From the NCBI GenBank assembly GCA_022605425.2, contig CM061256.1, positions 496,001 to 560,000 of the forward strand: a stretch of DNA of 64,000 nt, written 5' to 3'. The translations under genes were made by a program, and so were the position numbers. This document shows, one piece after another, positions 19,363-20,060 of this stretch; the first letter of the stretch is position 1; each line of letters opens with the position of its first letter. The notes below the pieces were generated by a model. The model did no database searches and had not been told where the DNA came from. It worked only from the letters and a program-made list of their open reading frames with translations. Origin of the DNA: Hamiltosporidium tvaerminnensis FI-OER-3-3. Lineage: Eukaryota; Fungi; Microsporidia.

Positions 19363-20060
19363 TCACATCTTTTTAAAGAAGTGGCAAGTTTTACATTTGT
19401 TTTCTTACATTACCGCAGTTCTATGTTTAACATAAAAAAAACTATTCTTTGACATTTCATCGGTACCCCTTGGGATACCTACGTCCCAAAGCCTTTCATC
19501 TACCAGGTGTTTAGAACCTAAAAAATCGGCGAGGCAGTTGCCCGGTGTTCGTTAATGTCCGTTGCATTGAGTGTGATCGAAGGCCGAAGCCCCCCCTGGG
19601 CTCCCCCAAGACTATGCAGCATTCCCACTTACTCTACACTTTCTGAACCCAATAAACTTCTAGCTAAGATATATTTCAGAGACTTACACGGGGTCCACCT
19701 AGACAGTGCAATGTCATACCAACAGGTACAACCTGCTACTTAGCTCTCCCGGCTTTAAATAAGATTTATCTATTATATCGCTAGGCGCTAATTCTTCTAA
19801 CCCGAGTGAGCAAGGCTAGGTTTCCATGCTTTTACATGGCAATTACCTACATGTTCAGCTGCGGTCTGCAATCTGGTTACATAAAAAACTACAAATAAAT
19901 TTGTAGAAAAAGCTTCTCCATTTCTTAGACCTCTTATCCTCATAACAACTTCCATGGAACAACCGAAGTGTAGTGTGGTTTTATTCCCACCAAAAATCCA
20001 AACAATGACCTCACACCAGTTTCACACACTCATTGCCAAGCAGAAAGTTTTTTATGTGGT
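19363..20060. mobile_element. Dispersed ~690-bp non-coding element, copy A (SINE-like, structured RNA, or retroelement 3' region)
   Basis: Collinear end to end with 51385-52071, including a 40-nt identical block at 19528-19567 = 51547-51586, and with the reverse complement of ~60965-61640. Confidence 0.8.

Follow-up and report, generated by a model that had tools for sequence, protein, structure and literature searches.

In a 64,000-nucleotide stretch of the Hamiltosporidium tvaerminnensis genome, here termed the window, a non-coding repeat lies just downstream of an intact open reading frame (ORF) encoding a reverse transcriptase (RT) and endonuclease, raising the question of whether the two form one mobile unit and, if they do not, what kind of element the repeat is and how it disperses. 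The original prediction had described a discrete, structured non-coding unit that is mobilised whole, either as a non-tRNA, SINE-like partner of the RT element or as an unusually long 3′ RNA module of that element. Hamiltosporidium, a parasite of Daphnia, has a large, repeat-rich microsporidian genome and serves as a model for the inflation of genomes through vertical transmission and drift.

We surveyed 196 kb of sequence, consisting of the window and 132 kb of other Hamiltosporidium contigs reached via RT proteins. A family-profile search with nhmmer identified 12 copies of a ~730-bp repeat, nine of which are full length and share both ends, while one (copy B) lacks 17 nt at its 5′ end and two are fragments. 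Eight copies lie in the 132 kb of further contigs, and two loci of 46 kb together harbor none. The four copies listed previously were all recovered by both BLASTN and nhmmer, at slightly wider coordinates, since the true ends lie ~14-17 nt outside the earlier limits on each side. Copy A (19346..20074, minus strand), with its ends set by anchor motifs, is full length, matches model positions 3-746 (nhmmer E 5e-229) and has diverged by ~7% from the family consensus (K2P 0.07). Copy B (51367..52071, minus strand) is the 5′-truncated copy and has diverged by ~11%. Copy C (60938..~61660, plus strand) is an old, full-length copy in the opposite orientation (model 3-747, nhmmer E 1e-138), ~41% from the consensus (K2P 0.60), and fragment D (33586..33801, minus strand) is an old internal remnant spanning model positions 96-315 (nhmmer E 4e-20). 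The other fragment, at L004:7047-7316, is internally deleted. The ten-copy alignment places the termini at (A)GTGGAGGGAGG and AAATAAAGT(G), with the 5′ start falling within a few nucleotides of a common position in nine of the ten long copies and the 3′ end reading AAAGT(G) in all of them. Together with the pairwise identities (81-82% between copies A and B, ~55% between copy C and each of these), the alignment bears out the proposal that the long copies have nearly common ends and very different divergence, and the common ends, the TSDs described below and the 12 copies support a discrete non-coding unit that is mobilised whole.

As had been proposed, no ORF is conserved in the repeat, its longest open frames (59-110 codons) differing in frame and strand between copies. 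Protein-level comparison revealed no kinship to RTs, with blastx returning nothing below E=2.8 and tblastx matching repeat copies only. Conservation is nonetheless uneven along the repeat. When substitutions were counted in 20-nt windows over the six youngest copies, the index of dispersion was 2.55, a value reached by none of 2000 column shuffles, so that the predicted alternation of conserved and variable blocks is statistically real, and the best-conserved part is the central ~130 nt. The repeat is also richer in GC than its surroundings. Its ends carry neither a poly(A) nor a microsatellite tail, and we concur with the original prediction that canonical Pol III boxes and long TIRs are lacking as well. 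Searches of metagenomes with the best-conserved 19-21-mers yielded no relatives, the sole match being to a bacterial contig of 55% GC and attributable to chance.

Several copies occur close to one another. In the pair at L004:3-723 and L004:869-1603, a young copy has landed 145 nt 5′ of an old copy with the same orientation, and two others (L004:14478-15191 and 16770-17505), inverted and 1.6 kb apart, flank a NOT2/3/5 gene. In addition, 5′-truncated RT fragments lie 75-85 nt from two repeat copies. A short segment of the window (~49355-49410, plus strand) resembles the last ~25 nt of the repeat (…GATGT…TTTAAATAAAGTG). No repeat or RT homology was detected upstream of this look-alike, at ~49395 (plus strand), and we treat it as a chance match, the alternative being a remnant of a related tail.

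The neighboring RT element occupies 20133..23935 on the minus strand and contains an intact ORF of 1253 aa (20174-23935) with 85% identity to annotated H. tvaerminnensis reverse transcriptases. Its RT domain matches Pfam RVT_1 (1.3e-27) and is related to L1 ORF2 and R2 proteins. C-terminal to this domain, a C-x2-C...H-x4-C motif and PD...DK...E columns are invariant across 18 homologues, and an AlphaFold2 model of the C-terminal domain (pLDDT 82) has as its best PDB matches the R2 proteins 9dou, 8gh6 and 8iby (E ~1e-6, prob 1.0), followed by PD-(D/E)xK cap-snatching endonucleases. The RVT_1 match, the invariant CCHC and PD columns and the R2-like fold of the model identify the ORF as that of an R2-like RLE non-LTR retrotransposon with RT, CCHC motif and a predicted PD-(D/E)xK endonuclease, in keeping with the RT-endonuclease (RLE) label it had been given. 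Like R2-clade RLE elements, it combines these features in a single ORF. Unlike them, it lies outside rDNA, in AT-rich satellite with a 14-bp TSD, has no N-terminal zinc-finger or Myb domain detectable by Pfam and is almost devoid of UTRs. Homology among four copies sets in at the ATG, which is therefore taken as the 5′ end and leaves essentially no 5′ UTR, and the 3′ UTR measures ~41 nt, with the 3′ end ...TTATTAAATAA(A) at this distance from the stop codon in all ~10 3′ ends examined.

RT copies tend toward AT-rich, satellite-like DNA made of TAATTTC(T/C) / TTTTAATTT units (window 20075-20132 and 23936-~24090; L002:380-522; L005:~7943-8087), which suggests that the endonuclease has a sequence preference, like those of other RLE elements. 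Homologues of the RT protein with 46-59% identity are numerous on metagenome contigs of 3.5-5.9 kb, approximately the size of the whole element. One homologue with 58% identity is filed in NCBI under a 'Candidatus Riesia sp.' MAG and probably stems from eukaryotic (microsporidian) DNA that contaminated a bacterial bin.

Having defined both elements, we asked whether they belong to one unit. One copy of the repeat was indeed said to lie directly downstream of the RT ORF, and physically this is the case: the stop codon occupies 20174-20176 and the 5′ end of copy A lies at 20074, 99 nt further downstream and in the same orientation. This arrangement is what favors assigning the repeat to the adjacent RLE retrotransposon as a long 3′ UTR module, with solitary copies representing 5′-truncated LINEs. 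The boundaries of the RT element, however, contradict it. The insertion is bracketed by an exact 14-bp TSD, with one copy directly upstream of the ATG (23936..23949, minus strand) and the other at 20119..20132 (minus strand), for which 0.05 chance matches are expected in the window. This duplication excludes copy A and separates it from the RT element; copy A begins 44 nt beyond the downstream TSD, after an AT-rich satellite spacer (20075..20118) whose ~51-bp periodicity resumes upstream of the RT element (23950-~24090). Moreover, among the ~10 RT 3′ ends, which all stop at the same point, only the one beside copy A is followed by the repeat, the others giving way to unrelated DNA or, at L001 and L002, to a host gene within 100-260 bp. 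A second, degenerate RT copy in the window itself (267..4001, minus strand; ~80% identical) likewise runs into unrelated DNA, with no repeat, at its 3′ end.

Sequence comparisons point the same way. No nucleotide similarity was detected between the repeat and the RT element, and when the repeat was compared with the 3′ regions of five sampled RT elements, drawn from several families, neither its head nor its tail showed extended similarity above background. The 3′ termini of the repeat and the RT element share a terminal 9-mer only, TTAAATAAA (p 0.035-0.06). The ragged 5′ ends typical of ordinary 5′-truncated LINE 3′ UTRs are not seen either, nine of the ten long copies sharing a uniform 5′ end, and copy A is an old insertion common to H. 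magnivora. The RT element and the repeat are thus separate units; the common RT 3′ end and a TSD of its own refute the notion of an unusually long 3′ RNA module, and we consider any version of it barely credible. Given the age of copy A, which is shared with H. magnivora and ~7% from the consensus, the best explanation for the adjacency is that the RT element landed in satellite DNA beside a pre-existing copy A.

In a search for an empty site, the locus of copy A was traced in other assemblies via the adjoining 154-aa gene. In H. magnivora the orthologous site also carries copy A; the flanking intergenic DNA is 97-98% identical there, and identity within the copy is no greater than in these flanks (both ~97-98%). 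No empty site was found at this locus in the second H. tvaerminnensis assembly (PITJ) or in the H. magnivora contig, both of which carry copy A. Both contigs end inside the copy and therefore provide neither an empty site nor an exact TSD for it; that no empty site was recovered is also explained by the two species being ~2% apart and all observed copies being older than that. The few differences between the two species in this intergenic stretch cluster at window positions 19254-19275 (7 of 22 columns relative to L011, versus ~2% elsewhere), ~70-90 nt downstream of the 3′ end of copy A. Across the family, divergence from the consensus ranges from 3 to 41%, the tree is star-like and GC content drops from 0.42 to 0.29 with age. 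Combined with the lack of a conserved ORF, this is as expected of copies that arose from source genes and decay neutrally.

We then examined the flanks of the repeat for traces of the insertion mechanism. The clearest TSD flanks the copy at L004:869-1603, where a 19-nt duplication with two mismatches abuts both ends and outscores all 90 mismatched-flank controls. Copy B and the copy at L004:14478-15191 have TSDs of 13-15 nt within 1-2 nt of the AAAGT end. In copy B, the upstream 15-mer (52072..52086, minus strand) abuts the truncated 5′ end and differs from its downstream counterpart (51352..51366, minus strand) by three mismatches, including a 1-nt shift, with 3% of control pairings performing as well. 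Owing to the age and AT-richness of the flanks, TSDs are convincing one by one in only three to five of the nine copies; the signal was also assessed collectively. When upstream k-mers were matched against downstream flanks in a permutation test on nine copies, only 1 of 7376 derangements was as good as the real pairing at k=15. At k=12, with matches anchored within 12 nt, 12 of 7376 were as good, and 46 of 7341 once the best copy was left out. The duplications are long and variable, ~13-21 bp.

A second feature of the insertion sites is the motif TTTTAAT(T/C), which precedes the 5′ junction by 3-8 nt in four of ten repeat copies and in two of four full-length RT copies, as compared with 1.6% of 20-nt background windows. 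The corresponding p-values (1e-5 and 2e-3) are optimistic, because the motif was spotted by eye before testing. The long, variable TSDs and the motif held in common with the RT element point to target-primed reverse transcription (TPRT) in trans. The family further combines full-length 5′ ends and a fixed 3′ end with a single 5′-truncated copy, copy B, and the TSD of this copy abuts the point of truncation, as expected for 5′ truncation in TPRT.

The original prediction had emphasized RNA structure, on the grounds that stems are kept while loops change. This can be seen in copies A and B and fails across the ten copies. Two copies, each folded as both strands, gave MFE z-scores of -0.66, -0.06, -0.17 and -1.0. 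RNAalifold assigns the ten-copy alignment -15.6 kcal/mol with a positive, and hence penalizing, covariation term. The six youngest copies have an SCI of 0.49 in the sense and 0.50 in the antisense direction, corresponding to z-scores of -1.5 and -2.9 against column shuffles, a control that flatters the real alignment. The three stems proposed earlier are paired in 75.6% of cells versus 73.7% in shuffled alignments (42 of 500 shuffles as high), and their covariation score is 0.12 versus 0.086 (27 of 500 as high). One hairpin, CAGGT/ACCTG, presents a true compensatory change from A-U to U-A in one copy and is broken in the other old copies. Rfam returned nothing at the gathering threshold for either the window or copy A, and only noise at E<=10. 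A by-eye look for an HDV-like ribozyme at the 5′ end found no P1 partner for the first 7 nt. A special RNA structure of the repeat is thus not supported, although the test is weak in both directions, because the dispersed copies are decaying pseudogenes.

The repeat also differs from Pol III-transcribed elements. ARAGORN found no tRNA genes in the window, and neither ARAGORN nor Rfam revealed a tRNA, 5S or 7SL head on the repeat. Conserved T5-T6 runs occur at sense positions ~79, 165 and 187, and T-runs are present on the antisense strand as well. Pol III terminates at such runs, so a full-length Pol III transcript is unlikely on either strand and would stop within ~80 nt in the sense direction.

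The window lies at ~496-560 kb of chromosome record CM061256.1 (GCA_022605425.2), where an identical product is encoded for one of its genes, which is Der1-like, and none of its DNA is human or viral. As a whole it ranges from 15 to 39% GC and contains several other kinds of repetitive sequence. Minisatellites with periods of ~30, 60 and 75-78 bp and the core GGGGTGTTAA / TTAACACCC occur at 11571-12254, 24192-25272, 25594-27689, 29264-30446, 38509-38697, 40838-41103 and 42047-42281, both in intergenic DNA and within long ORFs, including a 1592-aa TOG-domain ORF (25302-30080). Two tandem arrays are highly homogeneous: 7581-8565 (80 bp x 12.3, 99% identity) and 9804-10818 (77 bp x 13.1, 96%). 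A decayed Helitron lies at ~54023-58272 on the minus strand, its broken ORFs matching Helitron_like_N (1.9e-28) and Pif1 helicase 2B / helicase domains.

These observations bear on several other identities that the repeat might have. Its elevated GC content, the preservation of some blocks and the hairpins common to copies A and B could be taken to indicate a family of functional structured RNA genes in which every copy is at work. This is hard to reconcile with copies that decay toward genomic AT content and diverge by up to 41%, with stems that break in the older copies, with fold z-scores that are not significant and with a copy A no better preserved between species than its flanks, all of which render such a gene family highly improbable. 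LTRs typically have a size such as the ~730 bp seen here, sharp common ends, uneven conservation and no coding capacity, and LTR retrotransposons have been reported in this genome (PMC4202319), so the copies might be solo LTRs or the terminal repeats of a non-autonomous LTR element. Their termini, however, are not TG..CA, and their duplications, at 13-21 bp, exceed the 4-6 bp of LTR elements. Nor do any two copies surround an internal region in the 196 kb: the closest two in direct orientation (L004:3-723 and 869-1603) are 145 nt apart and only 70% identical. We accordingly regard an LTR origin as improbable, and a derivation from DNA transposons as somewhat more so. A non-autonomous element of the latter kind, MITE-like or derived from a Helitron, might be suspected from the 5-nt inverted match CACAT..ATGTG, from the decayed Helitron in the same window and from reports of MITEs in microsporidia (PMC7313128). 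The inverted match, however, is internal to the true ends, the real termini lack TIRs, and the TSDs are variable and too long. To our knowledge, duplications of this length exceed those of known DNA transposon superfamilies. Helitrons generate no TSD and have a CTRR end; the repeat has TSDs and lacks that end.

A further reading, in which one functional host ncRNA gene of ~730 nt gave rise to all copies as processed retro-pseudogenes, dispersed as a by-product of LINE activity, is closer to the evidence, since TSDs, full-length copies and star-like decay fit it equally well and the well-kept central 130 nt could reflect constraint on the source gene. It is weakened by the absence of any Rfam match and of a thermodynamic or covariation signal, and no intact outlier that could be the master gene was seen. 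In addition, a density of ~1 copy per 16 kb, accumulated over a very long period of activity, is more typical of a dedicated retroposon. We therefore deem a host-gene origin unlikely.

On balance, the repeat is probably a Hamiltosporidium family of ~730-bp non-coding, non-autonomous retroposons, SINE-like but distinct from Pol III SINEs. It falls outside the strict definition of a SINE, having no Pol III head, while behaving in a SINE-like manner; at ~730 bp it is longer than the usual range of roughly 80-500 bp. The TSDs, the truncation of copy B and the star-like decay are hallmarks of TPRT that acted for a long time on a discrete RNA made by a few source copies. On this basis we infer an RNA intermediate: a discrete RNA would be transcribed from source copies, probably by Pol II or through read-through, and copied into the genome in trans, via TPRT, by an RT/endonuclease that an autonomous non-LTR element supplies. 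The endonuclease would nick AT-rich DNA near TTTTAAT(T/C), and staggered cleavage of the second strand would give rise to the 13-21-bp duplication, with most cDNAs reaching full length. The sense strand of the repeat would be the minus strand of the window for copies A and B, an orientation read from the sequence of one slightly truncated copy.

The most likely donor of the machinery would be the R2-like RLE family, one intact member of which happens to adjoin copy A. The 14-bp TSD of the RT element belongs to the same size class as those of the repeat, and the R2-like endonuclease fold also supports this partnership, which we regard as suggestive and not conclusive. Against it stands the lack of extended 3′-tail homology between the repeat and any RT family sampled. 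The original proposal of a non-tRNA, SINE-like partner of the RLE element is thus upheld as regards a SINE-like retroposon, with its TSDs, truncated copy and common insertion motif, whereas the link to that partner remains suggestive. A more ambitious model is conceivable, if rather unlikely, in which the repeat is a dedicated, Pol II-transcribed retroposon parasitizing the R2-like LINE, its conserved core (the central ~130 nt) recruiting the LINE protein without a common 3′ UTR; this would be a mode of recognition so far undescribed for R2-type elements, and the repeat would be the first SINE-like family on record for microsporidia.

The proposed relationship has parallels in other lineages. 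In Entamoeba histolytica, EhSINE1/2/3 are mobilized by EhLINE1/2/3, with which they have a clear 3′-terminal stretch in common. The repeat, which we compared with them by description, is likewise a non-coding sequence of several hundred bp in the AT-rich genome of a parasite, with a putative RLE-type LINE partner, no tRNA/7SL/5S head and variable TSDs; unlike EhSINEs, it shares a 9-mer only with the RT element and belongs to another host lineage. R2 SIDEs and the trypanosomatid RIME/NARTc are internally deleted elements that consist of the 5′ and 3′ termini of the LINE from which they derive. They resemble the repeat, as interpreted here, in being non-autonomous, dependent on a non-LTR RT, discrete and larger than classical SINEs, but no resemblance between the repeat and the RT element was detected in nucleotide or protein sequence. 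With classical Pol III SINEs it shares the many, mostly full-length copies, the TSDs and the lack of an ORF, and differs from them in its T-runs, its length and its lack of both a tRNA/5S/7SL head and a poly(A) or microsatellite tail. Eg-R1 of Blumeria graminis, an element of ~700 bp with an A-rich tail and no recognizable Pol III promoter, is comparable, again by description, in size, non-coding nature, dispersal and absence of Pol III boxes, the repeat differing in its lack of poly(A).

Surveys of transposable elements in microsporidia have reported LINEs, LTR elements, DNA transposons, Helitrons and MITEs from Hamiltosporidium and make no mention of SINEs (PMC7313128, PMC6944219, PMC4202319), and a full-text search for literature on SINEs and non-LTR retrotransposons in microsporidia returned general papers only. 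For LINEs of this genome, Parisot et al. (PMC4202319) give 12 families. The repeat family has probably been filed as 'unknown' in RepeatModeler libraries. It introduces no new principle, since similar pairs are known from Entamoeba and trypanosomatids. If the density of ~1 copy per 16 kb holds genome-wide, however, the family could fill a few percent of the genome. Should its dependence on a LINE be borne out, it would add to the Hamiltosporidium repertoire the non-autonomous retroposons, a class that goes unmentioned in these three surveys, and would provide a natural substrate for studying template and target choice by an R2-like endonuclease/RT with almost no UTRs.
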